DNA of 44,494 nt from NCBI GenBank assembly GCA_904063045.1, contig CAJFCJ010000093.1, forward strand, positions 18,629 through 63,122. The letters are read 5' to 3'. The notes under the pieces are model-generated. The model was not told the origin of the DNA and searched no databases. It was given only the letters and a program-made list of their open reading frames with translations. Source of the stretch: Dimorphilus gyrociliatus (Eukaryota; Animalia; Annelida). Shown one piece after another: positions 17,905-41,881 of this stretch. A program made the position numbers and the translations under genes. Within the stretch, counting starts at the first letter, position 1; each line of letters opens with the position of its first letter.

Positions 17905-17924
17905 TTGTTCAGTTTTGGAATATA

Positions 17925-19574
17925 CAGTACGGGTAACCTATTTTTGAACGCCCAGCTATTTTCTATAATAGTTAAAATATTTTTTCTATAACATTAATTT
18001 TACAATCGAATAATTAGACATGGCAATTATCTCTTTGTACACAACAGATTCAACTAGTTAAATTTTTAAATTTCACTGTTTAAATAACAAAAAAAATTTT
18101 ATTCTGAAAATGTCACAAAAAGTGGCCGATATCCTATTTTTGAACTTTATGAATTCTGATAAAAATGTTGTTAGAAAAGGTAAGAAATATGTTTATTTTT
18201 ACATTTTATTAACGTATAGATTATATTACTTCAAATAATCACTTTTTCTTTTTCTTTAATATCTTATATTATATCCTTTATTTTTCCGACATAATCTGGC
18301 TCTTTTATGGAAGCTTTTGTATAAATTTGCAATATACCAATTTGGTATGTTATTAAATTCCTCTTCTACTGCCCTCCACAAATCATCTTTTGTCTGCAAA
18401 ACATGGGTTTGCAACCTATTTTTTAAGTAAGCCCACAAATTTTCAATAATGTTCAATTCTGGGCTTCTGGATGGCCAGTCTTGTAAAACTGTTATATTGT
18501 TTCTCTCAAGAAATGTCCTTGTAGATGCCGATTTATGACATTTGGCACCATCCTGCATAAGCACATTGTCTGGCTCAAACATTGGAAATAGCTTCTCCTC
18601 AAGTATTTCTTGGTATAAATTGCTGTCCATATACCCATTATATAACTTTATAGCTCTTGTCCCATCAGCTTTTATACACCCCCATATTGATATTGATGAA
18701 TTTGCTGTTCGAACAGCTTTTTTGGTGTATTTTGGATCATACCGTTTATGACTCCCCCTATGGACCCAAATTCTCCTTTTTGGATACAATTCAATCCGAC
18801 TTTCATCGGAAAGTATAATTTTGTTTACATCTTCTTGACTCTTATTTAACATAGACAAACAAAAAGATTTTCTATTTCTTGCATGGCAAGGTTTTAGCGC
18901 TGGCTTACTTGTTGCAACATAGCCTTTAAGGTCGTTTTTTTTTGCAAAATCTTTTTGCATGTCGATAGAGAAATTTTGGAACCTAATCCTGAATGTTCAA
19001 GCACATTCCTTGCCATTAGAAATGGATTTCTCTTTGAAATTTGGCAAATTTTTCTCTCTTCCCTTTCTGTTAAAATCTTTGGGGTACATAGTTTCGATAG
19101 ATTGTTAATAGTTCCATGTTTCTCAAATTTTTTTGTTATGTAGTGGACAGATCCCTTTGAAATTTTTAATTGTTTTGCAATTTCGTTCATTGACATCTTC
19201 TCCTTCCTCTTTTCCAACACTAATTTTCTCATGTCCAAGCTTATTTTTGGCATTTTTAACTTTTTTAAAATTGTTATTCTACTTTCATTCTTGACATAAA
19301 TTGTCATGTGGGAAAGCAAAAAATTTTGGTCATTTTCGTAAATTTTTAATTATTGTTCAAAAATAGGATATCGGGTACTTTTCACGATTTTTTCATAATA
19401 AAAATTTTTTGTTATTTAAACAGTAAAATACAAAGATTTAATTAATTGAATATGTTGATTACAAAGTCACAATTGCCATGTCTAATTGTTGGATTGTAAA
19501 ATTAATGTTAAAGAAAAAATATTTTAACTAATATAGAAAAAAGCTGGGCGTTCAAAAATAGGTTACCCGTACTG
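17925..19574 (-). mobile_element. Full-length Tc1-family transposon (1650 bp) with ~220-bp IR/DR-type TIRs and TA TSD
   Basis: TA|CAGTACGGGTAACC at 17923-17938 and GGTTACCCGTACTG|TA at 19561-19576. TIRs span 17925-18145 and 19355-19574, each with two copies of cctatttttgaac (outer 17937-17949, inner 18133-18145). Confidence 0.93.
18256..19253 (-). pseudogene. Tc1 transposase (DD35E spacing) with a single frameshift in an A9 run
   Basis: HTH ORF MPKISLDMRK... plus catalytic ORF with LSDESR, MQDGAKCH and SPELNIIENLW (35 aa between D and E). The two frames join if the A9 run at ~18935-18943 were A10. Confidence 0.85.
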
Positions 19575-19955
19575 TATTTGAAGAAAGATAATTGAGTTTA
19601 GATGAACTATTGGATAAACTTGTTTATTTAAATATGTTTTCAAATTTCCTATTTTTTGCTCTGCAAAATTTGAGTTGAAAAAACATTACTAAATTTAGGC
19701 CTACTATATCTTTGTAATAACTTTATATTATATTTTTGTGATGTAACTAATGGAAATGACAGTAAAAAATTTTTATTGAAGATATTTATAATGCGCATTT
19801 ATTATTCAGAGTTTCCATGTTTGATATTTTTATTATATAGATAAAAAATAACTAAATGCTGATATTGTTTTTCAAAGCTCTATTTGAACAATAGATATAC
19901 AGTATTATATAGTCAAAAGAATACTATTTTGGAAAAAATACAAATATATTCTGTT

Positions 19956-20306
19956 ATGAATGATAGAGGACCACCACCTTCATATAGTGAAGCATGCAAT
20001 TCTATGAATTGTGCTCCCCCTCCTACTGCTTATACTGTTCCTATGCCTGCTGCTAATCAGGATGCTGCTCCAGCTGAAGTTGTACATCTTCCTCATTCTA
20101 ATCAACAGAATAAAGAGACATGCAAACTAAAAAAGATACATAGAAAAATATTAAGTGGTATTCTTGGAGGACTTATTATAGCTTCAATTGTAATTATATT
20201 CTTAGTCAAATATGTATTTACAAGTAAGATATCATTTCTCTTTTTTCTAATATAATAAACAATACAATATTTGTATATTCAAATCTTTTTTGTTCTAGGT
20301 AAATAG
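19956..20306 (+). CDS. Small single-pass membrane protein with N-terminal PPxY motif (~91 aa), copy 1
   Basis: MNDRGPPPSYSEAC...KILSGILGGLIIASIVIIFLVKYVFT|SK*; intron 20224-20298 (GTAAGA...CTAG). Confidence 0.65.
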
Positions 20307-22993
20307 AAGTTTATTTGGAAAAGAAGATAACTAGAGAAAAACAAAAGCAAAAAATATTACAGCTAGAGATAGATTATACTCATTTATATAAATAATTTGA
20401 TTTTTTTTTGTATTTGTACTTTGAAAAATCAAATAAAAATTGTATTTTTAGATTCTAAGAGAATATTTTGTATAAATTATTTACAAATAGTGATATACTA
20501 ATATTTAAAAGCTTAAATAATGGCATATTTTTAGAGAGATATTTATTACATAGATAGACCCATTATACAGTTATCACATTAGAAAATGGCCAGTAAAAAT
20601 CAACCATATCTCTCTCTATCAGTGCCAACCAGTACACAACAGTAAAAATTTAAATATTTGACAATGATAACTGGAGTTACAATGCAATTGGCGAAAAAAC
20701 AAGATTGGAATTGATGTACTCAGTATTGGCAAAACTCTGGACTTTCATTAATACACTGGTGTTATTTAGAACTGAATCCATTCTTAATGTTAGTATTTTG
20801 TGCACATAAGAGGACCAAACGGTACAAAGATAAATGCAAGCTAAACCTACAACCTGACAAACCTAGTCCTATACCTGGACCAAAGGTCCATATATAACTT
20901 CAAGTTGTGTCAATCACCTTTTTGTCATAGAATTTACCTTCAAAATACACACTGGACAAAGCAAAGTTGATTAGAAAACCATTGCATTGTGTAGAGATTA
21001 CTTTGCGTCCTATTGTATAAAATACAATCCTGGACAAAAATATCCATATAGGGAAAAAAGAAAATGTATATAGTTAAGAGAATTATGTGGCGCAAAGGTT
21101 ATTAATTGACTTGAATATCCCTTGGTCTTTACTGAAATAGATTTATGAGAATAAATAAAAAGTTATCCAACATTCTGAGAAACAATATTTCTTTGTAAAA
21201 GTAATTTCAACAGATTTGGGGAAATTTTGAAACTGTACAGATGATTTTGCAGCAATTTACAATGGCTCTGACACGTCTACAGCATTTGTGAAAAATTGAT
21301 GTGGTAATACTGGAAATTTGGATCAACTAGTATTTTCTTTTACTTTTATACTTATTTTAACAAATTTGGTTTGATTAGCAAAACAATAGAAAATTTTTTA
21401 TACAAACATCTACAACGCCACCTGTTGGACTCTCTGAAAACTAAAACTACTGAAAAAGGATTAGAACATGCAATGACACATATTTCTAATTGATATTACA
21501 CTTATATTACTTGATAATTTCGTTTCAATTTTATTTTGTAATCCTTTGTTTCTCTGACACCGTTCTGTTGCATTCATTCCCTTTTATACCCTGCTTGAGT
21601 GTTCATTGTGTCATGTAGTAAAAGTAGAAATTTTACACTCCAGTGGGAATAAACAGAAAACAGACCCAAGTAGGACATTTAAAGGCAGCAGTTTGGGTTG
21701 AGAAATACTTGGGAGGAAAAAAGCATTTAATGATTTGTTGTTATTTCTAATAACCAGATATATAACTTAATCAGTCAACTTCCCATTTGATTTTAGATAA
21801 TTAAATCCTTCACCTTTCTCCCTTGTCTAGCATTTGATCAAATAGAAAGAGAAAGTAAAAATTAACAGTAGAAAATCCAACCAGTTGTGTTGTTAATAAT
21901 GTTTAATTAATTTAAGTTTAATATCGAAGTAGATAGTTCATAATAGCAGGTTGCCAAATTAGCAAACAAATAGAATCCAACAATAGAGTGTAGAAGGCTA
22001 ATCTCATCTGAGATTGTTTTCCAGGTGGTCTTCCCACAATAATTAGATTGAGAAAGATCAGTGAGTGTTTGAATACTTTAAGGTTTGCCTCTAATATCCA
22101 ATCATCACTTTACAATTGACAAATTGTCACATTTATCTTTAGGAATTATTTGGGTTCAACAATCATGGTGCAATGTAAACCACATTAACATTACATTGGT
22201 CTTATTCTCCTTTGCGCAGCAAACAAAAAAAAACAACATTGCTATTGTTAAGCATTCATATTAAATAGTATTGAGTTTTGACCAGCATTCTTTCCGTTGA
22301 TTTTGGTTTTTCGATGAGAACAAAACTTTTCTCCCAACTGTAGTCGTCAGTACTTGTTAGTAAAAATTACACCAGATTGTCACTGATTATTTGAAGACAC
22401 GGTATTGTTTTCTTTCTTTCTTTTCAGCCGATTCCGAATTGTTACTCCTACATCTAATTCCTTTAGAATCTTTCGTCCTGTCATCGTTTCCGTGTTTCTT
22501 TTCAGTTTCTTTATACACCTTTTTTATCCTGCCTATATCTACCTATCATAATTGACATTGTCCATATTTTTTAATTGGTGACCTTATAAAAAAAATGACA
22601 TTGATGAAAACTAGGTCAGAATTTAGTCAATCAGACATATAGGGTTAGGGACTTTTGGATATTTCCCAGAAGCGTAGAAACCTTATGAAACATTCCTGCT
22701 TTATTGTTATACGTTCTGAACTTTCTATAATAAAAAAAAAATATCAAACAAGTGTACTTGAAAGAGGGAATTTCTATTTTGATATTCTATAAGATGATTC
22801 ATTTCCTCCAAATGTCATTTGAATAAATTAGAATATATTAGAAAGGGGGAAATTTTTCAGTAATGATTTAGATATACTGTATATATATATAAATTCTTTA
22901 ACTTTAAAAATTAGTGCTAATTTTATCTCTTCATTCCAATCCAGTTCAAAATCTTTATTTTTTTCAACTATAAAATCTTAATTTTGGATTAAT

Positions 22994-23560
22994 ATGAATA
23001 ATATCAATACTGATCAAATGGATTTATCACAAAAGTTTCCATCAAAAGGCAAATTGCAATGTGAACAGTCGAAAATTAATGAAGAAATTGTTTTCTCTGA
23101 TCAAAGTGAGAATAGAGTCGAATGGATTTCTCCTCCACCATATACTGCTTCTGTTCCCAACGTTAATGACGCAGTTGTTTTCTATCAACCACAAAGAGCA
23201 GTTGTAGTTCAACAACCTTATGTTCCCGATAATTTGGTAAGAAAAAACAAATATTTCCAAATTTTTATTTTGTAATGATATCTTTTTAAAAAAATCTTTC
23301 TCTTCTCTTTGTTGTTACAGATTTGGAGTATAATTTCTCTATTTTTCTGTTTGCTTACTGGATTAGTGGCATTAAGTCTAAGCATGGCAAGCAGAAGAGC
23401 AAAAGAAGAAGGAAATTATCAGGAAGCAAAAGCAAGAGCTTCTTCTGCAAAATCCCTTGCCATTGTTTCAATTATTATTGGAATATTGATTGGTGCTCTT
23501 AGCGGAATTATAATATATGTAACAAGGACATCAAATAAAAATACTAGAGAAACTTATTAA
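22994..23560 (+). CDS. CD225/dispanin (IFITM/PRRT-like) membrane protein, 160 aa, 2 exons, copy 1
   Basis: Exons 22994-23236 and 23321-23560 (phase-0 intron, 84 bp): ...SPPPYTAS...VPDNL|IWSIISLFFCLLTGLVALSLSMASRRAKEEGNYQEAKARASSAKSLAIVSIIIG..., the canonical CD225 pattern. Confidence 0.88.
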
Positions 23561-24309
23561 AAAAACATGTTTTTACAGTTTTTTATTATAATTTTTTAAG
23601 GATTTTCAGACTCATTTTTGAGCTAAACATAATCTAGTTTTCTTACTAGACTGCCAAGATTATGTTTGTGTATGTAAATATTTGAATGTCATGTTTTTAA
23701 GTAATGTAGACAAAACATTCTCTTAGAATCCATTAGATCAAAAAGTTTTAATTGATTTTTAAAAATAAAAATACAAAAAAAAATCAAATTATTTATTTAA
23801 AAGAGTAAAATCTATAGGAAAAAAGAAAAATGATCTATTTTATGAAAATACATATTTGACTGAAAATCTCTAATGTTTTTGATAAAATGGAAAGAGAAAG
23901 TAAACATTGTCATTCACCTTAGTCTTCGTATTAGCTTTAACTTACTTTTTGGTATGAAAGAGAAAATTTTTTAACATTTTATTAATCCCTGAAAACAGAA
24001 ATAGAAAAACATTACAATTCTCAATGATTTCGAAAATGGAAAAGCTCAGAAAACAGAACAAAACAGAACCTTATAATTACCACAGTAGTTCAAACATTAG
24101 AAGCTGATTGGGATTGTTTGCTAAGAAGTATGTTAAAGGACAATTTCAAATATAAAAATTTGAAAGAATGTAGACTTGTTTCTTATGGATAAAAGTTGGT
24201 GGTAAACTATTTTTTTTGGATTTCAAATTTTTATAGGCCTCTTTAAATATTTAGGAATGTGGTTATGTGGTTTTATCATAATCTTAACTCAACCCTGAAC
24301 CATTGTTTC

Positions 24310-25867
24310 ATAGGAATATATATATATTGCTTGTGTAAAATGGAATACACATCCATGAATTTGTGATTCTGGGTATATTTTGGATACAGCTCTCCACAGA
24401 CCCATCTCAAAATCAATTGTTATCTTCTCAGGCTGTGACATGCCAGTCAGGTTTCTGACACTCTGAAGAATGAAACATTCATCTGAAAGTAGTTAAAGAA
24501 TGAATTTCTCAAAATGATACCTTAAATGCTTTTTTATAACTCTTTCTTTTCTTTGATGTCATAAAAATAATCTTTTCCCACTGGAACTTGTGTCAGTTTT
24601 ACAAATATCTTTCAAATCTTTTCTGATTCTGATGTCACTGGTTAGGTGGTTATTTTTACCATGAATATGTTCTAAACTTCCCTTGATGAATGTTTTTCCT
24701 TGCTGGCGAATTCTTGCAGGGCATCTTTGTTTTTTGGTCCTCTTACTGCACACCCAAATGATACTTTTTGAAGTTTTAGCTTTTACAGTGAATGAAAATC
24801 CATCATTTATCAGAATATCTTTTCCCATTTGACTTCCACCTTTAACTATTTGAAAGTTGTCATGGATAAGTTCCTGCAAGTGTTCAATGTTTCCATTGTT
24901 CAATATTCCATTGTCATTCACATTTGCATCCATCACACCTTCATTTGCATCTACAACCACATCTTCATTTAAATTTTCATCCATTTCATTTCCATTCATC
25001 TGACAGTTATCAAAATTGCCACCATCACAAAACTCTGGCTCATTTGAAACTTGGTGACTTTCTCCATCTTCATTTTGAAGATTAGTTGAATTTTGTAATT
25101 TTCCATCAACATCACCAGTTTCTACAATTTGATCTTCTGGTCTCTTCATCTGAAGAAGGAATCTGTTTTTTTCACAATCCAGACAAACTGACACCTTAGA
25201 ATCTGATTGAAATAGCTGAATATTTATAAATGCCATATTGAATATAGAATCATACTTATGACACATTTTTGATGAATAATTTCATTGCAGAGCACACAAG
25301 ACATTTTCTTCTGTCTTTCATATACAAAAAGCTTACAATTCTTACATTTGACTGTCATGTTTTATGAATAATTCTCTATGCCAGACTGAAAATATTAAAT
25401 GTAATTAGTGAATAAATAAAAAATAATATTATTGAACACATCTAGAAAACAAGAATAATATTTTGATTTGAAATGAGTATTGGAAAGGTATACTTACAAT
25501 TATTCAAAATGGCTGAAAAATATTTTTCAAATAAATTGGATTTTTTCACAAAATTAAAAAACATGTATTGAAAATATGAATAAAACATTAATCTAGATTA
25601 CAATGCACATGAAATTACCTCTGTTACATCTAAAATGATAATCTTTGCCCAAATATAATTATCAAAAAAGGCTTGAGTTTCAAATTAAATTCTTTCCAAA
25701 GTGAAAGTTAACTTCAGTTTCTTCATTTTTAAAATGGCTGTCAGTTTATATTTCAACAGTGTTTCTATTTTTGTAGCTTCCATTATTATAATTCTAAATA
25801 ATAACATTAAAAAAATGTAATATTTTTATGGGTACGGTTTCACCCAGGTACGGTTTCACCCGCTACC
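24310..25867 (-). mobile_element. MULE #3 (same TIR family as #2), internally deleted and 3'-truncated, left-arm copy
   Basis: TIR units ggtacggtttcacc at 25830-25867; intact spliced PHD MTVKCKNC...CVLCNEIIHQKCVI|NSKVSVCLDC; FLYWCH; then DFEMGLW...GCVFHFTQA; the DGTFK region is missing. Confidence 0.85.
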
Positions 25868-25989
25868 ATTTCATAGCTCTTAGTTCTAAGTCACCTTTCT
25901 AAAAAATTAGCTGTTTTAATAATTATCCTAATCCATTCTCAATCCATAATCTTACCACACAAAGTTTGAAGTTTGGAGGATAAGTCAAA

Positions 25990-26165
25990 AATTGACTACC
26001 CAAAATTATAGCTGTTTTACTGTGGGACACATTCTTCCTGTCATTGAAGGGATATCACTCAACATGGGCAGGAATTATGTCTTCCAACAAGACAATGCAG
26101 GCTGCCACACAGCAAGAGCTACTAGGAGGGCCTTTAGAATGATTGGTATAGATCCAATTGATTGG
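25990..26165 (+). mobile_element. Tc1 transposase fragment (mirror at 33844-34019)
   Basis: MGRNYVFQQDNAGCHTARATRRAFRMIGIDPIDW; same family as 40626-41000. Confidence 0.8.
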
Positions 26166-26370
26166 CATCTGATGTATATGCTCCATAGATTTTACCTACA
26201 TTTCATATTCTCTTTTTCTTTTCATTTTATTTTTATTTTTTTTAATTTTTCAGATAAATGTATGTTTATATATTTGACTATATACATTATATCAATATAA
26301 CATAGATTTCATTTTCACAAGTTTAATAAACATATACTGTTTATGAAATTAACAATGGGTGCAGTTTATT
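26165..26370 (+). mobile_element. Detached 3' end of a MULE #2-family element (mirror at 33639-33844)
   Basis: Reverse-complement homology to ~7640-7830 (e.g. ctccatagattttacct, catagatttcattttcacaagtttaataaacatatac). Confidence 0.75.
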
Positions 26371-26460
26371 GGAAAAGGTTAGGTACAGCCAAGGGCTGGG
26401 TTAAGGTTAGGGTAAAAGCACTTATTTTCGGACAAGTGGACAAATTAACTAGAAAATGTA

Positions 26461-26840
26461 CCACAATTTCGTTCATCATCTGAATGAGTACAATGAACAA
26501 TTCCATAACAAACTAATTCAATTGATATACAATAATTCTGTTTTTTACACAGATATTCTCAAGTTTGGCATTTCTTGACTGTACAATCATTTAAATTGGA
26601 GAATGGATAATGAACTGTACTCGAAATATGACCCATTGAATAATACCCTAGTTTACAAGGTATTGTTTTAAATAACACTCTTTTTTCAGCAATTGGACAT
26701 CCCATTTCATTCAAATACTTGTATATATTAAAACAAGCTGCAAATTCTTCATCAGCTTCACTTTCACAATTTAATTGAAAATTGCAAACCAAATGATTAG
26801 GTATGCATTTATTATCGCAGATGAGTTGAAATGTAGCGAA
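26461..26840 (-). pseudogene. LDL-receptor class A (LDLa) repeat exon, GRL101/LGR-like ectodomain relic, left copy
   Basis: FQLICDNKCIPNHLVCNFQLNCESEADEEFAAC ... CQT*EYLCKKQNYCISIELVCYGIVHCTHSDDERNC|GT: two LDLa motifs separated by an in-frame TGA. Confidence 0.7.
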
Positions 26841-26994
26841 AAAAGTGTGGGATTAAACCAGTACCTATCCTAAGGTATAGTAAGCCTGTCAGAGATCAGT
26901 CTGGTGGCAATCTAACCAGCCACTTTTCCCCTCTCACTTGATAAAGGAGGAATTCCTCCGAAATATTGTGAGTTTTAATCTGGTTATTGAGACT

Positions 26995-27296
26995 TCAGTG
27001 GTGCCACAGTATAAAGCAGAGAGTAATTATTCAATTTCTTGCATCGCAACAAGTTATTGCAATTGATATTTATAGGCAACTGAAAGCTTTTTTTGGGAAC
27101 ATGGGCATTCTATCATGAACCATTGACTAAAAGAGCTTCTTTAAAGTATCATACAAAGTTTTCTCCACCACCAAAAAAGGTTAAGACAGGTAAGTCTGCA
27201 GACAAAACTGATGGCACGTGTATTTTGGGACAGGGAAGGGTTTATTCAACTAGAATTTTTAAATTTGCAAGTCAGAATGAATTCAAAGATTTACAT
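26995..27296 (+). mobile_element. Mariner relic truncated at the inner arm junction
   Basis: SIKQRVIIQFL...FYHEPLTKRASLKYHTKFSPPPKKVKTGKSADK; homology to the right copy stops at 27296. Confidence 0.85.
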
Positions 27297-27410
27297 TTCT
27301 TAAGAGATTAACCTGCCGTCATTCAGAATAGTTATTCTTCAATGTGGAACGCAACCTTCCAAGGGTATCACTCAGGGAGAAAGTGAGAGTGCTACTCTAG
27401 GGCGTTAAAA

Positions 27411-27439
27411 CCCTAACCCCAAGACCTAACCCTAACCCT
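27411..27439. repeat. Short degenerate (CCCTAA)n telomere-like run
   Basis: ccctaa ccccaa gacctaa ccctaa ccct, about 115 bp inside the spacer. Confidence 0.55.
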
Positions 27440-28022
27440 TTTACGAATTGGTTTCTGTAAATTGATAATTCCAAATCTATACCTGTCATAAATTTTTGAA
27501 AGTATTAGTCATTTTAAAAATGAAAGTCATCAATATTTCAGCTTCAAATCCCTAGTTACACTTTATCATCTGCAAATAACTAATCATTTAAGAATAATAA
27601 TCCGATTAAATTCTAGTGCAAGTAGACAAAAAGTTGAAATTATAACCAAGTTCTGAAATATTTACCAAGGTCTCATAAAAAATTCATCTTTTTCTGTCTT
27701 TGTTGAATTTGTAAAGAGAATACTAGAGAAAGACAAAAACAAGCCATATACAATACAGCTAGAAAATTCCTATTGTGCATCAAAAAAAAACCCAATAGCT
27801 GACTGTCTTTGTTAATATAAAATGGACATTATTTATCATGACTATAGTCACGTGATACACAATTGATCTATATTAATGAAAAAAAATAAACATATTATCA
27901 TACTATAAATAACTGAATAGATATACATTTTGTTTTAAGAATATAAGAAGGGATTTATTTATTGTGGGTAATATGTGGCTGAGGTTGGAAAATTAGTGAT
28001 TTACCACCAATTTATATAATTT

Positions 28023-29548
28023 TTACATTATATTTGTTATTTGATAATAGCATATTGACATATTGTCTTCAGTTCTTCCAAAGCCTTTAATATAAACAGC
28101 TTGACAATAATCTTTTCCACAATTACAAGAATATGTGCAAGATTGACTATCTTCTACATCAATCAATTCACAGCTATAGTACTGCCCAAGAAATCCTGGT
28201 TCAATTTGTAAATCTTTTGGGATGTAAGCTATTATTCCAGAGTTTGATAAACCTTGCTTGACATCAACACAATTTTGTAAATTTTCCCCTTTTATTAGTA
28301 TTTTGAAATTTTTCATTTTGGAATCAACAGTTGGCCAAGGAATTCTTAAATTAAAAGTTTCATTAGCATATACATTGATGCAAGTTGGGGCATTTTTGTC
28401 ATCCATTATCTTCTTCAACTTGTCATTTTGTGTACTTTTTATATCATCAAAGATTGGTCCATTAGTACAGGAATGAATGATAAGAGACTGACGATTACTT
28501 GCAGAATTGTAATCACAACTGTCTGACATAGAATTAATTATATTGCATTGCTGTTCTCTATAATCAGGGGTATAATTAATCATATCACAATTTGATTGGT
28601 GACTGCAAAGATTTTTACAATCTTTTATACTTTTGACTGTGTATTGTCCAATTGGTCCACATTTGACTTGAAAACAGGTTTGAGATTTCTGAGCAAGTCT
28701 GTGATAAGTCACTTTATCCATAAGATTTTCTTGATCAATTTCTCTGCAAAAATCTAATGATAAAATGCATACAGTTGACGAAAGATTGTACTGGAAACAA
28801 CTGCAATTTAAAATTGATAAACATTCTCTTGAACATTCTTTCAATTCAACTGCACTGAGTACCAACACTTTTGAAGGTAAATCAGTCAGTCTAGTAACTT
28901 TTATAAACCCAGGTATAAAAGTATTGTCATAGTAACATTTGCCATTAACAAAGCAACAACCGTACGCTTCACAATTCTGCTGAGTAGTCATAGAAGATCC
29001 ACATAAAGTTTCTGTAACATTTTCACATTGTCCTACATTGAGTACAGGATCTGTTTAAAAAAATATCATCATTTCAAGTTTTGTTACAAGTTGCAGGTAG
29101 CCTTACCACAAACTCCATTTTTTCGTCCAACATAATTATATCCATTCTTTGGAGAAAATCTCCTGGGTTTTGAATGGCGGTCATGTTTATTCAAATGACA
29201 AATTGAAGAATTTTGAAAGTATTCAATTGACCTGAAAAAGATTTTTTTCCATGATATCTAAATTTTTGATCAAATATTTCAAATGTTAAATTGCTGACTT
29301 GCAATTTGAATATTCAATACATTTCAATTTACATTCTTCCAGTGATAGAGTTCCTACATATATGTTATTGTTGTCAATTTTAAAATTGTAAAACGTTTCA
29401 GTGAAGCAAACTGTATTTGAAAGAGAAAATTTAGAGTGAAACTGATTGGTTAATTGGCTAAAAATTTACTATTTGATCTTGACAATACATTTTCCAATTC
29501 ATTTTCCATCAGAAAGATGAATAGACAATGATATTGCAAACTAAACAT
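28023..29548 (-). CDS. Secreted Cys-rich protein, ~447 aa, 4 exons: PAN/apple, trefoil(P-type)-like, two PAN/apple, unknown C-terminal domain
   Basis: Exons 29548-29470, 29410-29299, 29231-29107 and 29050-28023 total 1344 nt in frame; introns 59, 67 and 56 bp. Motifs: SLEECKLKCIEYSNCKSIEY...ICHLN; CGSSMTTQQNCEAYGCCFVNGKCYY; ECSRECLSILNCSCFQY; DCKNLCSHQSNCDMINY. Confidence 0.78.
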
Positions 29549-30457
29549 TTGGTGTGAATGCAACAGCTCTGAAATTCTCTAGCCAACTGCATGATTTTTT
29601 CCCTATAATTTGATTAAATAGACTTGGATGTAGGCCTTCTAGAATATTGAATTGAATAGTAAGAATTCTTTTATTTCATCATCTTTCTAATTGAGATTTT
29701 GTAGAAAAAATTAAAAGTCTAATTAAAATATTCATATTTTATAAGACCATTTTATTGAAAATGGAAGCATATAGAGTTTTTATGTGCAGACAATTTGGTA
29801 AAATTAACAAGTCTTTTAAGAATTTGTCAAGCAATTACTACTTTGGAGATGACCATTAGACTTGTCCTATTAAAATTGTTGCATCTTATACAACTCAAAA
29901 CAAAAATGCATAGAGTAACATTCTACTCTTTTGGGGTACTTACAAAGAAAATTTTGCAGAAGAAAAAATATTTTTGGTAATATTTATTGTACTTTGTTGT
30001 ATTGTAATTGTAGAAATTTCTGCTTCTTCTGAACAGTATTCCCATTAAGGCATTCATTCCCTTCTATCATTTTTTGACAGATTGTCTACCTTTTAATTTT
30101 TTAATTTCCTTTTTAACAATTCTATGGTACATGTCATTTTTAAATGTAGAAAGAAAAATTCCTTTACACCACTTGACCAAGTCTGCAATAGAATTATCAA
30201 CTTATTTAACAACTATGAAGATATTTTAGAGAAAGTTTATTCATATTGACAAATGGATCGTTTTTAATGCAAAACTATAAATAACTTTTACCATATATGG
30301 TAGTTAGTTATTAATTTTATATGATTTTTCAAATCTAATTGGAAATTATCTAATTTTTTAATTTATTAATTCAAATTTCAGCCAATGAAACAGTTAGAGG
30401 TTAAATGAAATCAATAGTTTTTTAAATAGTTGATATTAAACTATAGTTTTTTAACAG

Positions 30458-30765
30458 AGCATTTGTATTCTGAGTATGATAACTTTCAGTCAAATTTAAC
30501 CAAAAATCTTTTATGGTTAGAATCAAAAAATGAAATAGCAGTAGAGATAGAGACTTGCAAGAAAGTTTGTGATATTTTATCAAGCTGTGTGTTAGTTTTT
30601 ACAATTGAAAATATTTTTCTTTGATAATTTTTTTCACATTTTCAATTATATTCAGTGGATTTGATTTCAAGAAAGACAAATCGGGATGTTGGCTAAAATC
30701 CAATGCTATTAACAGTGTTCTAACATTTACACCTGAAAATTCGACAGCCTTCTATGGCAAAGATA
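30458..30765 (+). CDS. Partial PAN/apple-domain gene or gene fragment (two exons seen)
   Basis: ETCKKVCDILSSCV|GFDFKKDKSGCWLKSN, joined by intron 30591-30655; start and stop exons not resolved. Confidence 0.55.
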
Positions 30766-31789
30766 GTGAGTTTCTACTAAATTTTAATTTTATATTTTTA
30801 AAATTTATATTTCTTTCATTTAAAGAATCTTGATTTTTTTTAATAGGATAGGCTACAGAATAATCCTTCATGATCCTACACATATTATCTGTTAAATGGT
30901 TTTTTTAGCAGTAGGTATTTAGTTAGGTGGTATTTTTTGAAAACACTTATATTTGATTTTAAACTTTTATATATCTAATTCATATCTATATATATGCTTG
31001 TACTGTTTAACATCAATATTATCTTTTGATGAATTATTGGTGTTAAATATGAAAATTTTCTCTTTCAGAGAAAGGTCAATATCCATTCAACAGGAGTTCA
31101 TTGTCATTATGGATTTATAGATAGCATTTAAAAATTAATTTCTAAAGATTGCATGTACTTTGTTGTATTGTGATCATAGGAGTACATGAAATTGAGTACA
31201 TGAAAGTACTGTTCTACTGAGAACCTCAGTTAGAAAACTAATCTAACAAATTAGGTCAGATAAATTTAGGCAGTCAACTACTTTTGTAAAATGCAACAAT
31301 TAGTTTGTCAAATGTATTAAAACTACCGAGAGAAAATCAAAATTGCAATACAATATATACTTCTGATTATTTAGTATACTGCAATTTTGATAGTGACAGC
31401 TGCAAAGTGAAAAATAACTGCTGAACTGACAAACACTAAATATTTCTCAGGTAAAAAGCATTTACATTTTTGAACATTGTTTCTGTTGACCCTGTCTCAG
31501 TTTAATATTGTTTAATAATCAAACCCTTTCAAATAGCGTTACTTACTTGTGTCAAATGTTTTGCTAGTTGCTGGGTTAAATACGATAAATTTATTGCAGT
31601 AATCTCTCAAATCAATGTCACTCTTTGTAGATTTTCAACGAAAACAGCATTCATTAGCTTTATTATTTCCTAAATATAGAACATTGACCAATGTTGGAAT
31701 ATTGCAGTTAATGAACAATAAATGATACATTCATACAATATATTGACACCATAAAGAGACTAAGAAAGAGATTACATAGAATCAGACCT

Positions 31790-32072
31790 GAAAAACAAGT
31801 AACTTTACAGCATGATAATGCAAGACCATATACAAGTCTCCTAACAACAGACTTTATAAGAGACCCAGGGTGGTCATTATGCCCTCACAGACTATTATCT
31901 TTTTAGGAGATTGAAGGACCATATGAGAGGGGTCCATTATGATAATTTGGAAGAATTGAAAAAAACCATCAAAGATTTTCTAAGGAGAAAGCCATTCTCC
32001 TTTTATCAAAATGGTATCAACCAACTTGCAAGCAAATGGCAAGCTTGCATAGAGAAAGGAGGGGAATATTAG
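31790..32072 (+). mobile_element. Mariner catalytic/C-terminal relic
   Basis: LQHDNARPYTS...DYYLFRRLKDHMRG...FYQNGINQLASKWQACIEKGGEY*. Confidence 0.8.
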
Positions 32073-32244
32073 AAAATATAATTGTTAATTAGAGTAGACT
32101 ATAGACTATAACATAAACAAAAATTAATAAAATTTCACAAAGATTTCTTACAAATTTTGATACTGTATATTTAGTGGGTGACAAAAATATCCCTTTTTTT
32201 CAATTTTGAGAAATATAATTATTTTTTCTTAAAATAGAATTTTA

Positions 32245-33014
32245 GGGTCACCCTGAAAGTTTTACCCATTTTTGTCTTACAGCTAAACAAAACTTACATA
32301 ATATGTTTAGTCATAAATATTAACTAATGTCTTAGGTATGTCTATATAGCTTCGAATTCCCCATTATTGTCAATGCATGTTTGCCACCTAGCAGGAAGCA
32401 TATCAATCCCTTTGGCAAAGTATAAGGGGCGGTTTGGATCTGAAAAATGCCTTTATTGCATTTTGTAATTTCTCATCATTCTCATACTGTATATATTATG
32501 CCCTGAAGATGGTCCTTAATTTCCAGAAAAGATAATGTCTGATGACGCCAGGTCTGGGCTGTAGGCTGGATGAAGCAAGACTACCCATTGTTGATCTAAG
32601 ATATTGAGTAGTTTGTAAACTTGTATGAGATCTGGCATTATCTTGTAATAAAATCACCTCTTTACCAGGCCTGATTCTATTTATTCTTTGTTTTGATCTC
32701 TTTAAAATGCTGATGTAAATCTTTGAATTCATTCTGACTTGCAAATTTAAAAATTCTAGTTGAATAAACCCTTCCCTGTCCCAAAATACACGTGCCATCA
32801 GTTTTGTCTGCAGACTTACCTGTCTTAACCTTTTTTGGTGGTGGAGAAAACTTTGTATGATACTTTAAAGAAGCTCTTTTAGTCAATGGTTCATGATAGA
32901 ATGCCCATGTTCCCAAAAAAAGCTTTCAGTTGCCTATAAATATCAATTGCAATAACTTGTTGCGATGCAAGAAATTGAATAATTACTCTCTGCTTTATAC
33001 TGTGGCACCACTGA
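32245..33014 (-). mobile_element. Mariner relic with 3' TIR, spanning the inner end of the right arm
   Basis: TA|gggtcaccctgaaagtttt at 32243; high similarity to 13021-13640; continuous across 32713. Confidence 0.85.
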
Positions 33015-33168
33015 AGTCTCAATAACCAGATTAAAACTCACAATATTTCGGAGGAATTCCTCCTTTATCAAGTGAGAGGGGAAAAGTGGCTGGTTAGATT
33101 GCCACCAGACTGATCTCTGACAGGCTTACTATACCTTAGGATAGGTACTGGTTTAATCCCACACTTTT

Positions 33169-33548
33169 TTCGCTACATTTCAACTCATCTGCGATAATAA
33201 ATGCATACCTAATCATTTGGTTTGCAATTTTCAATTAAATTGTGAAAGTGAAGCTGATGAAGAATTTGCAGCTTGTTTTAATATATACAAGTATTTGAAT
33301 GAAATGGGATGTCCAATTGCTGAAAAAAGAGTGTTATTTAAAACAATACCTTGTAAACTAGGGTATTATTCAATGGGTCATATTTCGAGTACAGTTCATT
33401 ATCCATTCTCCAATTTAAATGATTGTACAGTCAAGAAATGCCAAACTTGAGAATATCTGTGTAAAAAACAGAATTATTGTATATCAATTGAATTAGTTTG
33501 TTATGGAATTGTTCATTGTACTCATTCAGATGATGAACGAAATTGTGG
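33169..33548 (+). pseudogene. LDLa repeat exon relic, right copy
   Basis: Mirror copy carrying the same TGA. Confidence 0.7.
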
Positions 33549-34141
33549 TACATTTTCTAGTTAATTTGTCCACTTGTCCGAAAATAAGTGCTTTTACCCT
33601 AACCTTAACCCAGCCCTTGGCTGTACCTAACCTTTTCCAATAAACTGCACCCATTGTTAATTTCATAAACAGTATATGTTTATTAAACTTGTGAAAATGA
33701 AATCTATGTTATATTGATATAATGTATATAGTCAAATATATAAACATACATTTATCTGAAAAATTAAAAAAAATAAAAATAAAATGAAAAGAAAAAGAGA
33801 ATATGAAATGTAGGTAAAATCTATGGAGCATATACATCAGATGCCAATCAATTGGATCTATACCAATCATTCTAAAGGCCCTCCTAGTAGCTCTTGCTGT
33901 GTGGCAGCCTGCATTGTCTTGTTGGAAGACATAATTCCTGCCCATGTTGAGTGATATCCCTTCAATGACAGGAAGAATGTGTCCCACAGTAAAACAGCTA
34001 TAATTTTGGGTAGTCAATTTTTGACTTATCCTCCAAACTTCAAACTTTGTGTGGTAAGATTATGGATTGAGAATGGATTAGGATAATTATTAAAACAGCT
34101 AATTTTTTAGAAAGGTGACTTAGAACTAAGAGCTATGAAAT

Positions 34142-35699
34142 GGTAGCGGGTGAAACCGTACCTGGGTGAAACCGTACCCATAAAAATATTACATTTTTTT
34201 AATGTTATTATTTAGAATTATAATAATGGAAGCTACAAAAATAGAAACACTGTTGAAATATAAACTGACAGCCATTTTAAAAATGAAGAAACTGAAGTTA
34301 ACTTTCACTTTGGAAAGAATTTAATTTGAAACTCAAGCCTTTTTTGATAATTATATTTGGGCAAAGATTATCATTTTAGATGTAACAGAGGTAATTTCAT
34401 GTGCATTGTAATCTAGATTAATGTTTTATTCATATTTTCAATACATGTTTTTTAATTTTGTGAAAAAATCCAATTTATTTGAAAAATATTTTTCAGCCAT
34501 TTTGAATAATTGTAAGTATACCTTTCCAATACTCATTTCAAATCAAAATATTATTCTTGTTTTCTAGATGTGTTCAATAATATTATTTTTTATTTATTCA
34601 CTAATTACATTTAATATTTTCAGTCTGGCATAGAGAATTATTCATAAAACATGACAGTCAAATGTAAGAATTGTAAGCTTTTTGTATATGAAAGACAGAA
34701 GAAAATGTCTTGTGTGCTCTGCAATGAAATTATTCATCAAAAATGTGTCATAAGTATGATTCTATATTCAATATGGCATTTATAAATATTCAGCTATTTC
34801 AATCAGATTCTAAGGTGTCAGTTTGTCTGGATTGTGAAAAAAACAGATTCCTTCTTCAGATGAAGAGACCAGAAGATCAAATTGTAGAAACTGGTGATGT
34901 TGATGGAAAATTACAAAATTCAACTAATCTTCAAAATGAAGATGGAGAAAGTCACCAAGTTTCAAATGAGCCAGAGTTTTGTGATGGTGGCAATTTTGAT
35001 AACTGTCAGATGAATGGAAATGAAATGGATGAAAATTTAAATGAAGATGTGGTTGTAGATGCAAATGAAGGTGTGATGGATGCAAATGTGAATGACAATG
35101 GAATATTGAACAATGGAAACATTGAACACTTGCAGGAACTTATCCATGACAACTTTCAAATAGTTAAAGGTGGAAGTCAAATGGGAAAAGATATTCTGAT
35201 AAATGATGGATTTTCATTCACTGTAAAAGCTAAAACTTCAAAAAGTATCATTTGGGTGTGCAGTAAGAGGACCAAAAAACAAAGATGCCCTGCAAGAATT
35301 CGCCAGCAAGGAAAAACATTCATCAAGGGAAGTTTAGAACATATTCATGGTAAAAATAACCACCTAACCAGTGACATCAGAATCAGAAAAGATTTGAAAG
35401 ATATTTGTAAAACTGACACAAGTTCCAGTGGGAAAAGATTATTTTTATGACATCAAAGAAAAGAAAGAGTTATAAAAAAGCATTTAAGGTATCATTTTGA
35501 GAAATTCATTCTTTAACTACTTTCAGATGAATGTTTCATTCTTCAGAGTGTCAGAAACCTGACTGGCATGTCACAGCCTGAGAAGATAACAATTGATTTT
35601 GAGATGGGTCTGTGGAGAGCTGTATCCAAAATATACCCAGAATCACAAATTCATGGATGTGTATTCCATTTTACACAAGCAATATATATATATTCCTAT
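34142..35699 (+). mobile_element. MULE #3, right-arm copy
   Basis: Mirror of 24310-25867; ATG at 34651. Confidence 0.85.
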
Positions 35700-36448
35700 G
35701 AAACAATGGTTCAGGGTTGAGTTAAGATTATGATAAAACCACATAACCACATTCCTAAATATTTAAAGAGGCCTATAAAAATTTGAAATCCAAAAAAAAT
35801 AGTTTACCACCAACTTTTATCCATAAGAAACAAGTCTACATTCTTTCAAATTTTTATATTTGAAATTGTCCTTTAACATACTTCTTAGCAAACAATCCCA
35901 ATCAGCTTCTAATGTTTGAACTACTGTGGTAATTATAAGGTTCTGTTTTGTTCTGTTTTCTGAGCTTTTCCATTTTCGAAATCATTGAGAATTGTAATGT
36001 TTTTCTATTTCTGTTTTCAGGGATTAATAAAATGTTAAAAAATTTTCTCTTTCATACCAAAAAGTAAGTTAAAGCTAATACGAAGACTAAGGTGAATGAC
36101 AATGTTTACTTTCTCTTTCCATTTTATCAAAAACATTAGAGATTTTCAGTCAAATATGTATTTTCATAAAATAGATCATTTTTCTTTTTTCCTATAGATT
36201 TTACTCTTTTAAATAAATAATTTGATTTTTTTTTGTATTTTTATTTTTAAAAATCAATTAAAACTTTTTGATCTAATGGATTCTAAGAGAATGTTTTGTC
36301 TACATTACTTAAAAACATGACATTCAAATATTTACATACACAAACATAATCTTGGCAGTCTAGTAAGAAAACTAGATTATGTTTAGCTCAAAAATGAGTC
36401 TGAAAATCCTTAAAAAATTATAATAAAAAACTGTAAAAACATGTTTTT

Positions 36449-37015
36449 TTAATAAGTTTCTCTAGTATTTTTATTTGATGTCCTTGTTACATATATTATA
36501 ATTCCGCTAAGAGCACCAATCAATATTCCAATAATAATTGAAACAATGGCAAGGGATTTTGCAGAAGAAGCTCTTGCTTTTGCTTCCTGATAATTTCCTT
36601 CTTCTTTTGCTCTTCTGCTTGCCATGCTTAGACTTAATGCCACTAATCCAGTAAGCAAACAGAAAAATAGAGAAATTATACTCCAAATCTGTAACAACAA
36701 AGAGAAGAGAAAGATTTTTTTAAAAAGATATCATTACAAAATAAAAATTTGGAAATATTTGTTTTTTCTTACCAAATTATCGGGAACATAAGGTTGTTGA
36801 ACTACAACTGCTCTTTGTGGTTGATAGAAAACAACTGCGTCATTAACGTTGGGAACAGAAGCAGTATATGGTGGAGGAGAAATCCATTCGACTCTATTCT
36901 CACTTTGATCAGAGAAAACAATTTCTTCATTAATTTTCGACTGTTCACATTGCAATTTGCCTTTTGATGGAAACTTTTGTGATAAATCCATTTGATCAGT
37001 ATTGATATTATTCAT
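36449..37015 (-). CDS. CD225/dispanin membrane protein, copy 2
   Basis: Mirror of 22994-23560; identical ORF translations. Confidence 0.88.
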
Positions 37016-39702
37016 ATTAATCCAAAATTAAGATTTTATAGTTGAAAAAAATAAAGATTTTGAACTGGATTGGAATGAAGAGATAAAATTAGCACTAATT
37101 TTTAAAGTTAAAGAATTTATATATATATACAGTATATCTAAATCATTACTGAAAAATTTCCCCCTTTCTAATATATTCTAATTTATTCAAATGACATTTG
37201 GAGGAAATGAATCATCTTATAGAATATCAAAATAGAAATTCCCTCTTTCAAGTACACTTGTTTGATATTTTTTTTTTATTATAGAAAGTTCAGAACGTAT
37301 AACAATAAAGCAGGAATGTTTCATAAGGTTTCTACGCTTCTGGGAAATATCCAAAAGTCCCTAACCCTATATGTCTGATTGACTAAATTCTGACCTAGTT
37401 TTCATCAATGTCATTTTTTTTATAAGGTCACCAATTAAAAAATATGGACAATGTCAATTATGATAGGTAGATATAGGCAGGATAAAAAAGGTGTATAAAG
37501 AAACTGAAAAGAAACACGGAAACGATGACAGGACGAAAGATTCTAAAGGAATTAGATGTAGGAGTAACAATTCGGAATCGGCTGAAAAGAAAGAAAGAAA
37601 ACAATACCGTGTCTTCAAATAATCAGTGACAATCTGGTGTAATTTTTACTAACAAGTACTGACGACTACAGTTGGGAGAAAAGTTTTGTTCTCATCGAAA
37701 AACCAAAATCAACGGAAAGAATGCTGGTCAAAACTCAATACTATTTAATATGAATGCTTAACAATAGCAATGTTGTTTTTTTTTGTTTGCTGCGCAAAGG
37801 AGAATAAGACCAATGTAATGTTAATGTGGTTTACATTGCACCATGATTGTTGAACCCAAATAATTCCTAAAGATAAATGTGACAATTTGTCAATTGTAAA
37901 GTGATGATTGGATATTAGAGGCAAACCTTAAAGTATTCAAACACTCACTGATCTTTCTCAATCTAATTATTGTGGGAAGACCACCTGGAAAACAATCTCA
38001 GATGAGATTAGCCTTCTACACTCTATTGTTGGATTCTATTTGTTTGCTAATTTGGCAACCTGCTATTATGAACTATCTACTTCGATATTAAACTTAAATT
38101 AATTAAACATTATTAACAACACAACTGGTTGGATTTTCTACTGTTAATTTTTACTTTCTCTTTCTATTTGATCAAATGCTAGACAAGGGAGAAAGGTGAA
38201 GGATTTAATTATCTAAAATCAAATGGGAAGTTGACTGATTAAGTTATATATCTGGTTATTAGAAATAACAACAAATCATTAAATGCTTTTTTCCTCCCAA
38301 GTATTTCTCAACCCAAACTGCTGCCTTTAAATGTCCTACTTGGGTCTGTTTTCTGTTTATTCCCACTGGAGTGTAAAATTTCTACTTTTACTACATGACA
38401 CAATGAACACTCAAGCAGGGTATAAAAGGGAATGAATGCAACAGAACGGTGTCAGAGAAACAAAGGATTACAAAATAAAATTGAAACGAAATTATCAAGT
38501 AATATAAGTGTAATATCAATTAGAAATATGTGTCATTGCATGTTCTAATCCTTTTTCAGTAGTTTTAGTTTTCAGAGAGTCCAACAGGTGGCGTTGTAGA
38601 TGTTTGTATAAAAAATTTTCTATTGTTTTGCTAATCAAACCAAATTTGTTAAAATAAGTATAAAAGTAAAAGAAAATACTAGTTGATCCAAATTTCCAGT
38701 ATTACCACATCAATTTTTCACAAATGCTGTAGACGTGTCAGAGCCATTGTAAATTGCTGCAAAATCATCTGTACAGTTTCAAAATTTCCCCAAATCTGTT
38801 GAAATTACTTTTACAAAGAAATATTGTTTCTCAGAATGTTGGATAACTTTTTATTTATTCTCATAAATCTATTTCAGTAAAGACCAAGGGATATTCAAGT
38901 CAATTAATAACCTTTGCGCCACATAATTCTCTTAACTATATACATTTTCTTTTTTCCCTATATGGATATTTTTGTCCAGGATTGTATTTTATACAATAGG
39001 ACGCAAAGTAATCTCTACACAATGCAATGGTTTTCTAATCAACTTTGCTTTGTCCAGTGTGTATTTTGAAGGTAAATTCTATGACAAAAAGGTGATTGAC
39101 ACAACTTGAAGTTATATATGGACCTTTGGTCCAGGTATAGGACTAGGTTTGTCAGGTTGTAGGTTTAGCTTGCATTTATCTTTGTACCGTTTGGTCCTCT
39201 TATGTGCACAAAATACTAACATTAAGAATGGATTCAGTTCTAAATAACACCAGTGTATTAATGAAAGTCCAGAGTTTTGCCAATACTGAGTACATCAATT
39301 CCAATCTTGTTTTTTCGCCAATTGCATTGTAACTCCAGTTATCATTGTCAAATATTTAAATTTTTACTGTTGTGTACTGGTTGGCACTGATAGAGAGAGA
39401 TATGGTTGATTTTTACTGGCCATTTTCTAATGTGATAACTGTATAATGGGTCTATCTATGTAATAAATATCTCTCTAAAAATATGCCATTATTTAAGCTT
39501 TTAAATATTAGTATATCACTATTTGTAAATAATTTATACAAAATATTCTCTTAGAATCTAAAAATACAATTTTTATTTGATTTTTCAAAGTACAAATACA
39601 AAAAAAAATCAAATTATTTATATAAATGAGTATAATCTATCTCTAGCTGTAATATTTTTTGCTTTTGTTTTTCTCTAGTTATCTTCTTTTCCAAATAAAC
39701 TT

Positions 39703-40053
39703 CTATTTACCTAGAACAAAAAAGATTTGAATATACAAATATTGTATTGTTTATTATATTAGAAAAAAGAGAAATGATATCTTACTTGTAAATACATATT
39801 TGACTAAGAATATAATTACAATTGAAGCTATAATAAGTCCTCCAAGAATACCACTTAATATTTTTCTATGTATCTTTTTTAGTTTGCATGTCTCTTTATT
39901 CTGTTGATTAGAATGAGGAAGATGTACAACTTCAGCTGGAGCAGCATCCTGATTAGCAGCAGGCATAGGAACAGTATAAGCAGTAGGAGGAGGAGCACAA
40001 TTCATAGAATTGCATGCTTCACTATATGAAGGTGGTGGTCCTCTATCATTCAT
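39703..40053 (-). CDS. Small PPxY single-pass membrane protein, copy 2
   Basis: Mirror copy; differs by a synonymous Pro codon (CCC vs CCT). Confidence 0.65.
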
Positions 40054-40415
40054 AACAGAATATATTTGTATTTTTTCCAAAATAGTATTCTTTTGACTAT
40101 ATAATACTGTATATCTATTGTTCAAATAGAGCTTTGAAAAACAATATCAGCATTTAGTTATTTTTTATCTATATAATAAAAATATCAAACATGGAAACTC
40201 TGAATAATAAATGCGCATTATAAATATCTTCAATAAAAATTTTTTACTGTCATTTCCATTAGTTACATCACAAAAATATAATATAAAGTTATTACAAAGA
40301 TATAGTAGGCCTAAATTTAGTAATGTTTTTCAACTCAAATTTAGATAAAAACATATAAAGAGGACGAATATGTTATTCTACTTTCACAATTGGTTTTGCT
40401 AGAAAATGGTATAAA

Positions 40416-41837: not shown

Positions 41838-41881
41838 AATATGCAACTCAAGATAAATTTATTAAAGAGGATTTTACACCA

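Follow-up and report, generated by a model that had tools for sequence, protein, structure and literature searches.

A gene-bearing palindrome with 7.6-kb arms and a single-copy spacer in the genome of the annelid Dimorphilus gyrociliatus, and its probable origin by recent inverted duplication

Architecture and gene content of the palindrome

The window, that is, the whole stretch of DNA analysed here, is 44.5 kb long and forms the terminal part of the transposon-rich contig C93 (63,122 bp) in the published D. gyrociliatus assembly. It holds a large palindrome, composed of two nearly identical inverted arms around a single-copy spacer, whose right arm ends only 4,152 bp from the end of the contig. 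A base-by-base check of the window found no N gaps, and Rfam, tRNA and tandem-repeat scans of it returned nothing relevant. The arms and spacer, the two differences between the arms, and the genes and transposons in and around them are as follows.

17922..19577, minus strand: Tc1-type transposon of the left flank, its inverted ends 224 bp long (repeat finder, BLAST, Pfam DDE_3)
19666..27296, no strand: left arm, 7,631 bp (repeat finder, mirror test, gapped alignment, BLAST); its inner end is the new breakpoint
19678..19683, plus strand: the sole indel between the arms, a run of A6 against T5 at 40326-40330
19766..21829, plus strand: arm gene A, whose exon 1 encodes PPxY motifs and a membrane helix (exons 19766-20443, 21038-21115, 21389-21504 and 21773-21829)
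20018, plus strand: the sole substitution between the arms, C against the complement of T at 39991 (CCC and CCT, both Pro, in the frame of the 19884-20255 ORF)
22994..23560, plus strand: CD225/dispanin-family gene of two exons, 22994-23275 and 23309-23560 (Pfam CD225, E=4e-17; ORFs)
24289..25876, minus strand: remnant of a MULE-type transposon, with a FLYWCH finger and the tail of a MULE domain (Pfam; matches elsewhere in the genome are 96-99% identical)
26448..26852, minus strand: two LDL-receptor class A-like modules with an in-frame TGA (26559-26561) between them, identical in both arms
27297..32712, no strand: single-copy spacer, 5,416 bp, with a full-length match only to itself in the genome
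28023..28991, minus strand: spacer gene, a 322-codon open frame whose cysteine-rich product has a PAN/Apple domain (ORF list, Pfam)
32713..40342, no strand: right arm, 7,630 bp (same methods as the left arm), continuous with the spacer and the probable source copy
36449-37015, minus strand: mirror copy of the CD225/dispanin-family gene, in the right arm
38180-40243, minus strand: mirror copy of gene A, in the right arm
40411..41843, no strand: transposon copy in the right flank, 68 bp past the right arm and bounded by short inverted ends (alignment; Pfam DDE_3 at 40626-41000)

The repeat finder placed the arms at 19679-27296 and 32713-40330, with 100% complementarity and 5,416 nt between them, which confirms the spacer length given in the preliminary description of this locus. 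The mirror test, at coordinate sum 60009, found a single mismatch across 19679-27296, at 20018. Gapped alignment and BLAST pushed the arms outwards to 19666 and 40342, yielding 7,631 columns at 99.974% identity with one 1-bp indel. The mirror symmetry about this coordinate sum, reported earlier to have no net indel between 19884 and 27296, is therefore borne out by both the mirror test and the gapped alignment. The full-arm alignment, previously recommended as a check, further establishes that the synonymous SNP (20018/39991) and the 1-bp homopolymer difference found by spot checks are the only differences over the entire arm.

The complete arm is present in exactly two copies in the 77.9-Mb assembly and is thus not a dispersed element, and chance is impossible as the cause of the palindrome. 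A pair of mobile elements was considered and rejected, since there are only two full-length copies and no element ends; the inner end of the right arm falls within a mariner fragment that simply runs on. The matches of the spacer elsewhere in the genome consist of a paralogous gene family and mariner pieces. The left and right outer flanks have in common only short transposon pieces according to BLAST (the right flank being just 4.15 kb long), in agreement with their earlier description as unique, and the idea that they are alleles of each other was discarded on this comparison.

The exons of gene A were set by means of an intron-less paralogue at C43:86046-86981, in which the four pieces are adjacent, at 81-93% identity. 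The in-frame TGA between the LDL-receptor class A-like modules is present in both arms; the earlier statement that inactivating lesions common to the arms predate the duplication is correct, if trivial. In a word-index protein search, the sole match of the spacer-gene protein was the D. gyrociliatus paralogue DgyrCDS14500 (35% identity), and Logan or other read-derived records were not found; DNA paralogues lie on C50 and C70. The spacer gene had been called intact, which is plausible in view of its long PAN-domain frame and the annotated 35% paralogue, and a possible upstream exon keeps this provisional. If real, the palindrome doubles two genes, one of the CD225 family and one for a PPxY membrane protein. 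No function is implied for the palindrome itself.

Junctions and polarity

Four features lie at the borders of the arms and determine how these borders are read.

19576..19665, plus strand: 90 bp from a repeat family of 600 bp or more, truncated at 19665, where a blunt join to the left arm follows
27162..27296, plus strand: 135 bp of the mariner fragment of the right inner border, kept by the left arm and cut at the junction (BLAST, junction inspection)
27297..27440, plus strand: R140, the 3' end of a young repeat family, truncated on its 5' side, which directly abuts the new inner junction and ends in degenerate CCCTAA repeats
32238..32847, minus strand: mariner transposase fragment over the border between spacer and right arm, 32712/32713 (89.6% identity over 616 bp to the copy at 13014-13620 in the window; Pfam Transposase_1)

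Because the mariner fragment is unbroken at 32712/32713 and cut at 27296/27297, the latter is a new breakpoint, and the spacer together with the right arm represents the older arrangement. With its inner end at the new breakpoint, the left arm would be the derived copy, whether by fold-back or by insertion of a copy. Both junctions of the left arm, 27296/27297 and 19665/19666, are blunt joins with 0 shared bases, and each stands next to a truncated repeat. A 3-base microhomology (CAT) at the inner junction, suggested by a BLAST match reaching 27294, was rejected: the family has CAG at this place, which leaves 0 bp.

The relatives of R140, found on C227, C80/C53, C121 and C114, are 98.5-100% identical to it, so that this very young family sets an upper limit to the age of the event that made the new junction. 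The other copies run further left and have variable left ends and a common right end, and the missing left part of R140 is not located at the start of the right flank. About eight copies were detected, and three of them, two on C53 and the one on C93, are adjacent to palindrome arms. The family of the 90-bp fragment in the left flank has more than 20 copies of 80-88% identity, and all nine copies examined (9/9) continue with other sequence beyond the cut point. As a candidate empty site, the stretch following R140 (27434-27853) was compared with nine copies of the left-flank repeat, and the local alignments were no better than those of shuffles. The spacer beyond R140 is thus not a continuation of the left-flank repeat and the empty site is not reconstructable, which weighs against the explanation favoured below.

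A second palindrome, on C53 in the same assembly, is of the same build, with 6.0-kb arms and a 7.0-kb spacer, and its arms differ by 13 substitutions and 10 indels. One of them is matched at 99.98% identity by an independent contig, C80. Two distinct molecules thus exist there, and such palindromes are of different ages, which counts in favour of a real structure on C93.

Origin of the palindrome

The earlier proposal of a very recent inverted segmental duplication fits the complete alignment, in which the arms differ by one substitution in 7.6 kb and by no arm-specific insertion. The palindrome is probably real, the product of a very recent local inverted duplication through break repair, and most like the fold-back type with a single-copy spacer. 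The ancestral order would have been spacer, right arm and right flank, within a transposon-rich island. Where the present spacer begins on the left, a double-strand break may have occurred and been repaired by fold-back or template-switch synthesis, which copied, in reverse direction, 7.6 kb of the same molecule from a distance of 5.4 kb. This copy would then have been attached at its end, without homology, to another broken end, the present left flank, which would make 19665/19666 the new outer junction. The 144-bp retroelement-like R140 piece would either have been the site of the break or have been picked up as filler in the repair. Inverted microhomology at the inner junction is 0 bp, which weighs against a fold-back, as 2-8 bp are present at most human junctions of this kind.

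An assembly artefact, in which each haplotype has one copy of the arm and the palindrome arose by haplotype mis-joining or from chimeric PacBio reads, is rather unlikely. PacBio RSII continuous long reads were assembled with PBcR; HaploMerger2 served for merging and SSPACE-LongRead for scaffolding, and this pipeline counts in favour of an artefact. The assembly exceeds the measured genome size of D. gyrociliatus by 4-7 Mb (PMC7854359); this excess, the small size of the contig (63 kb) and the position of the arm 4.15 kb from its end weigh against a real duplication. The arm divergence on C53 (0.2% substitutions) is also close to the reported heterozygosity of 0.16%. Nevertheless, an artefact requires that two false joins arose independently and lie precisely at the limits of an inverted copy whose source is 5.4 kb distant; neither join falls within a shared repeat. 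An overlap assembler can produce such joins only from reads in which they occur, and random ligation would not select a fragment at a distance of 5.4 kb, which favours a real duplication; the assembly methods included no whole-genome amplification step, and N gaps are absent. Reads with missed adapters yield palindromes without a spacer, whereas here a 5.4-kb spacer and unrelated, unique outer flanks are present, the latter not allelic to each other. Moreover, a history with one copy per haplotype needs an inverted transposition of the cut-and-paste kind, which is less simple than a duplication. The anatomy of the junctions, as read from the assembled sequence, argues against the usual artefacts.

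An inversion with staggered breaks would be equally real with a different history, and although it is a close alternative to a fold-back, we regard it as rather improbable. One breakpoint would consist of two single-strand nicks separated by 7.6 kb, and the other of a break at the opposite limit of the present spacer; after fill-in and rejoining, the spacer would be inverted and flanked on both sides by a copy of the sequence between the nicks. The polarity would be the opposite at the outer borders, the border of left flank and left arm being old and that of right arm and right flank new. This model predicts the layout observed (an arm, an inverted middle and an inverted arm, of whose two inner borders one is continuous and one is new) and is compatible with blunt end-joining, and inverted duplications of non-repetitive flanks accompany 17/29 Drosophila inversions (PMC1885836). 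The truncated repeat in the left flank is old (80-88% identity), so its truncation could predate the event. On the other side, the model requires 7.6 kb to be unwound between the nicks, and the remainder of a cut R140 would be expected in reverse orientation where the right flank begins, and it is absent there. The latter point is not decisive, as R140 may have been 5'-truncated originally.

The least probable reading, and a very unlikely one, is that the palindrome is far older than the arm divergence of 0.013% suggests and has been homogenised by arm-to-arm gene conversion. It would account for 99.97% identity over 7.6 kb, and both differences do lie in the outermost 353 bp, where conversion tracts reach least (post hoc P about 0.002). 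However, the arms have no specific indels although transposons of the region match their relatives at 96-100% identity and hence were recently active, the nearly undiverged repeat at the junction means that a young age explains everything, and the differences between the C53 arms are evenly spread, which indicates no strong homogenisation there. The preliminary description had offered a recent duplication or one kept alike by conversion; its first part fits well and its second is not needed.

Significance and comparison with known systems

Taken alone, the palindrome on C93 is an ordinary structural variant of an already known kind. If real, it is a clean and nearly undiverged case of the birth of an inverted segmental duplication in an annelid, with both junctions legible to the single base and the direction of copying inferable from a transposon cut at one border only. 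Such a palindrome could mediate inversion of its spacer. The suggestion that the spacer flips and that read-through yields long dsRNA found no support here, the paired genes ending about 13 kb apart.

It is conceivable, if doubtful, that large palindromes with multi-kb spacers genuinely recur in the transposon islands of this compact genome, formed whenever breaks in young retroelements with telomere-like repeats, such as R140, undergo fold-back repair without homology. Were this true, an animal with a shrinking genome would have both a break-prone element and an unusually active pathway of inverted duplication. The wider value of the locus hinges on whether the palindromes of the assembly are biological, and the answer also matters for the quality of a reference used in studies of genome compaction.

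Large palindromes of mammalian sex chromosomes, the subject of Skaletsky et al. 2003 and Rozen et al. 2003, are said to be kept by arm-to-arm gene conversion. Like them, C93 has gene-bearing arms more than 99.9% identical (here 99.974%) around a unique spacer. However, the C93 arms are 10 to 1,000 times shorter and a recent origin is sufficient; great age, conservation in relatives and germline-specific genes are features of the sex-chromosome palindromes for which C93 offers no counterpart evidence. Young duplicates in C. elegans, according to Katju and Lynch 2003, are reportedly a few kb long, often inverted, near their source and with borders that ignore gene limits. The C93 duplication is likewise recent, local, of a few kb and independent of gene limits, although it belongs to another phylum and has larger arms and a larger spacer, crowded with transposon remnants.

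As in the staggered-break duplications of Drosophila (PMC1885836), gene-bearing, non-repetitive sequence is found inverted at both ends of a middle segment, the junctions are of the end-joining type, and inverted transposons play no part. In contrast with those inversions, in which the middle segment measures hundreds of kb, that of C93 is 5.4 kb long, and inversion of the spacer is here only hypothetical.

Human fold-back inverted duplications have spacers of 766-70,466 bp (median 3,428 bp) and inserted sequence at 5/21 junctions (PMC3907307). They differ from C93 in having arms of megabases rather than 7.6 kb and in being seen de novo (constitutional and tumour cases), whereas the C93 palindrome is fixed in the assembly; in addition, no terminal deletion or new telomere is visible here. 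The 5.4-kb single-copy spacer of C93 is nonetheless within the known size range (PMC3907307), one spacer border is original and the other new, and the outer end would be joined to another broken end, as in the human events. Fold-back junctions may also carry an insert, for which the 144-bp R140 piece on C93, either an insertion or pre-existing sequence, is a possible counterpart.

The inverted arms and their contents

The palindrome with near-identical 7.6-kb arms proposed in the preliminary description was fully confirmed. A repeat finder placed the arms at 19679-27296 and 32713-40330, with 5,416 nt between them, and comparison of mirrored positions (coordinate sum 60009) gave one mismatch only, at 20018. 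Once a single 1-bp difference within an A run is allowed, gapped alignment carries the arms out to 19666 and 40342, with 99.974% identity over 7,631 columns; the two differences seen in the preliminary spot checks, a synonymous substitution at 20018 (CCC versus CCT, proline in both) and a 1-bp homopolymer difference, are thereby borne out. The entire arm has exactly two copies in the D. gyrociliatus assembly (77.9 Mb, 349 contigs, about 29% G+C), all remaining matches being transposon pieces or diverged paralogues, and the spacer taken whole is unique in the genome. Both arm differences fall in the 353 bp farthest from the spacer (post hoc P of about 0.002). This clustering could reflect error-prone synthesis near the junction, weaker conversion at the arm edges, or a polishing effect, short reads being uniquely placeable only near the borders, and we put no weight on it. 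The features of the region are as follows.

17922-19577, left flank: Tc1 element
19766-20443, 21038-21115, 21389-21504 and 21773-21829 (+), left arm, mirrored in the right: exons of a spliced gene present in each arm
22994-23560, one per arm: two-exon gene of the CD225/dispanin family (Pfam E=4e-17)
Arm: FLYWCH/MULE transposon remnant, with relatives elsewhere 96-99% identical
Arm: Tc1 fragment
Arm: two LDLa-like modules with a TGA between them
Arm: mariner fragment, its first 135 bp
Spacer: 322-codon open frame with a PAN domain
From about 40411, right flank: another DDE_3 element

The flanks on both sides consist of transposon debris. Exon 1 of the spliced arm gene encodes PPxY motifs and a membrane helix. 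Its exon limits follow from an intron-less paralogue (C43:86046-86981), in which four separate arm pieces are contiguous; the paralogue, 81-93% identical to pieces of 19766-21829, suggests a processed retrocopy. The sole match of the spacer gene in a protein search was DgyrCDS14500 of D. gyrociliatus. DNA paralogues of this gene (28020-29853) were found on C50 (83%) and on C70, C46, C231, C98 and C136 (70-72%); it belongs to a family that is small and species-specific. The match to C50 extends some 860 bp beyond the upstream end of the 322-codon frame, and the gene may therefore have an additional upstream exon.

Two mariner-derived pieces in opposite orientation, 31911-32072 (+) and 32238-32916 (-), lie less than 200 bp apart inside the spacer, whose own transposon history is thus nested or rearranged. 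Tandem units of 16-22 bp, of the type GGGTTAAACC(A/G)TACCCA, occur at 7530-7622, 10180-10242, 25831-25861 and 34148-34178, mutually inverted, and are probably the ends of a single transposon family.

Junctions and the integrity of the assembly

At the right inner border, the mariner fragment 32238-32847 matches another copy in the window (13014-13620) over 616 bp, and therefore passes uninterrupted over 32712|32713. The left arm retains just 135 bp of this fragment, up to 27296. Spacer and right arm thus keep their original connection, and a new breakpoint lies at 27296|27297. The spacer begins there with a 144-bp repeat piece, R140 (27297-27440). The left outer border is formed by a 90-bp fragment (19576-19665) of a repeat family with a length of 600 bp or more, and in nine of the nine family copies examined, different sequence follows the point matching 19665. 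At the right outer border, 68 bp of unique sequence precede the transposon. The partners share 0 bases of microhomology at either left-arm junction (27296|27297 and 19665|19666).

For the published assembly, pooled adult females were sequenced on the PacBio RSII without an amplification step, and the reads went through PBcR assembly, Quiver and Pilon polishing, HaploMerger2 reduction and SSPACE-LongRead scaffolding (PMC7854359). An artefact of this process is conceivable, since the contig is small (63,122 bp), only 4.15 kb separate the palindrome from the contig end, which the window (C93:18629-63122) reaches, and the assembly, at about 78 Mb against size estimates of 70.9-73.8 Mb (PMC7854359), is somewhat oversized. 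However, both joins connect unrelated sequences and neither lies inside a shared repeat; such joins are beyond the invention of an overlap assembler and must be in the reads. Random ligation would not produce chimeric joins at both ends of an inverted fragment from 5.4 kb away, reads with a missed adapter make spacerless palindromes, no N gaps are present, and one copy per haplotype would require inverted cut-and-paste transposition, a less simple history than duplication. Junction anatomy, as read from the sequence, thus argues against the usual artefacts, and we regard an assembly origin as unlikely.

The junction repeat and a second palindrome

R140 is a very young repeat: its copies on C227, C80/C53, C121 and C114 match it at 98.5-100% identity and are located as follows.

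C227:11683-11817
C80:3217-3353
C53:88818-88921 and 107921-108060
C121:33703-33838 and 34198-34313
C114:22668-22771

The other copies run on leftward with common sequence and their left ends vary; the right end is common to the copies and terminates in degenerate CCCTAA telomere-like repeats. This is the pattern that the 3' end of a 5'-truncated retroelement would show. A tandem satellite of 1.9 kb or more (C121:31831-33701), with a period of about 150 bp, directly adjoins one copy. Three of the approximately eight copies detected border palindrome arms.

The second palindrome, which comes within 1.4 kb of the C53 contig end, has 6.0-kb arms (88920-94884 and 101905-107869) around a 7.0-kb spacer, with R140-family copies at both outer borders, the left copy being cut by the arm border. 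Its arms are 99.58% identical, with 13 substitutions and 10 indels evenly distributed. The final part of C53 overlaps the first 4.57 kb of C80 (C80:1-4573) at 99.98%, and the two contigs stand unmerged in the assembly. C80 reproduces the right arm at 99.98% and is 99.5% identical to the left, so two distinct molecules exist at this locus. The arms may be of allelic origin, their substitution divergence (0.2%) being near the reported heterozygosity of 0.16% (supplement, PMC7854359).

Origin of the C93 palindrome

A very recent inverted segmental duplication, one of two origins offered by the preliminary description, is the best-supported reading: the arms carry no private insertions despite recently active transposons in the region, and the junction adjoins an almost undiverged repeat. 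The same two points speak against the other origin, long-term arm-to-arm gene conversion, which is not needed. A staggered-break inversion (PMC1885836) also yields the same final layout and differs only as to whether the spacer has been turned and which of the outer borders is the new one; the absence of the R140 remainder from the start of the right flank is mild counter-evidence. Flipping of the spacer and dsRNA from the palindrome are speculative, since the paired genes converge, with ends about 13 kb apart.

For the recent duplication, the layout fits fold-back or template-switch repair. A minus strand whose 3' end lies at the spacer's left edge would fold back on itself and prime 5.4 kb upstream, at 32713; copying outward from 32713 to 40342 would give exactly the left arm, and the end of the new copy would then be joined bluntly to the left flank. 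R140 may be an insertion at the junction or simply the sequence that broke. In sequenced human fold-back inverted duplications, microhomology of 2-8 bp was found at 13 of 21 junctions, in contrast to 0 bp in C93, and five of 21 contain inserted sequence; the single-copy spacers of these duplications have a median length of 3,428 bp and range from 766 to 70,466 bp (PMC3907307).
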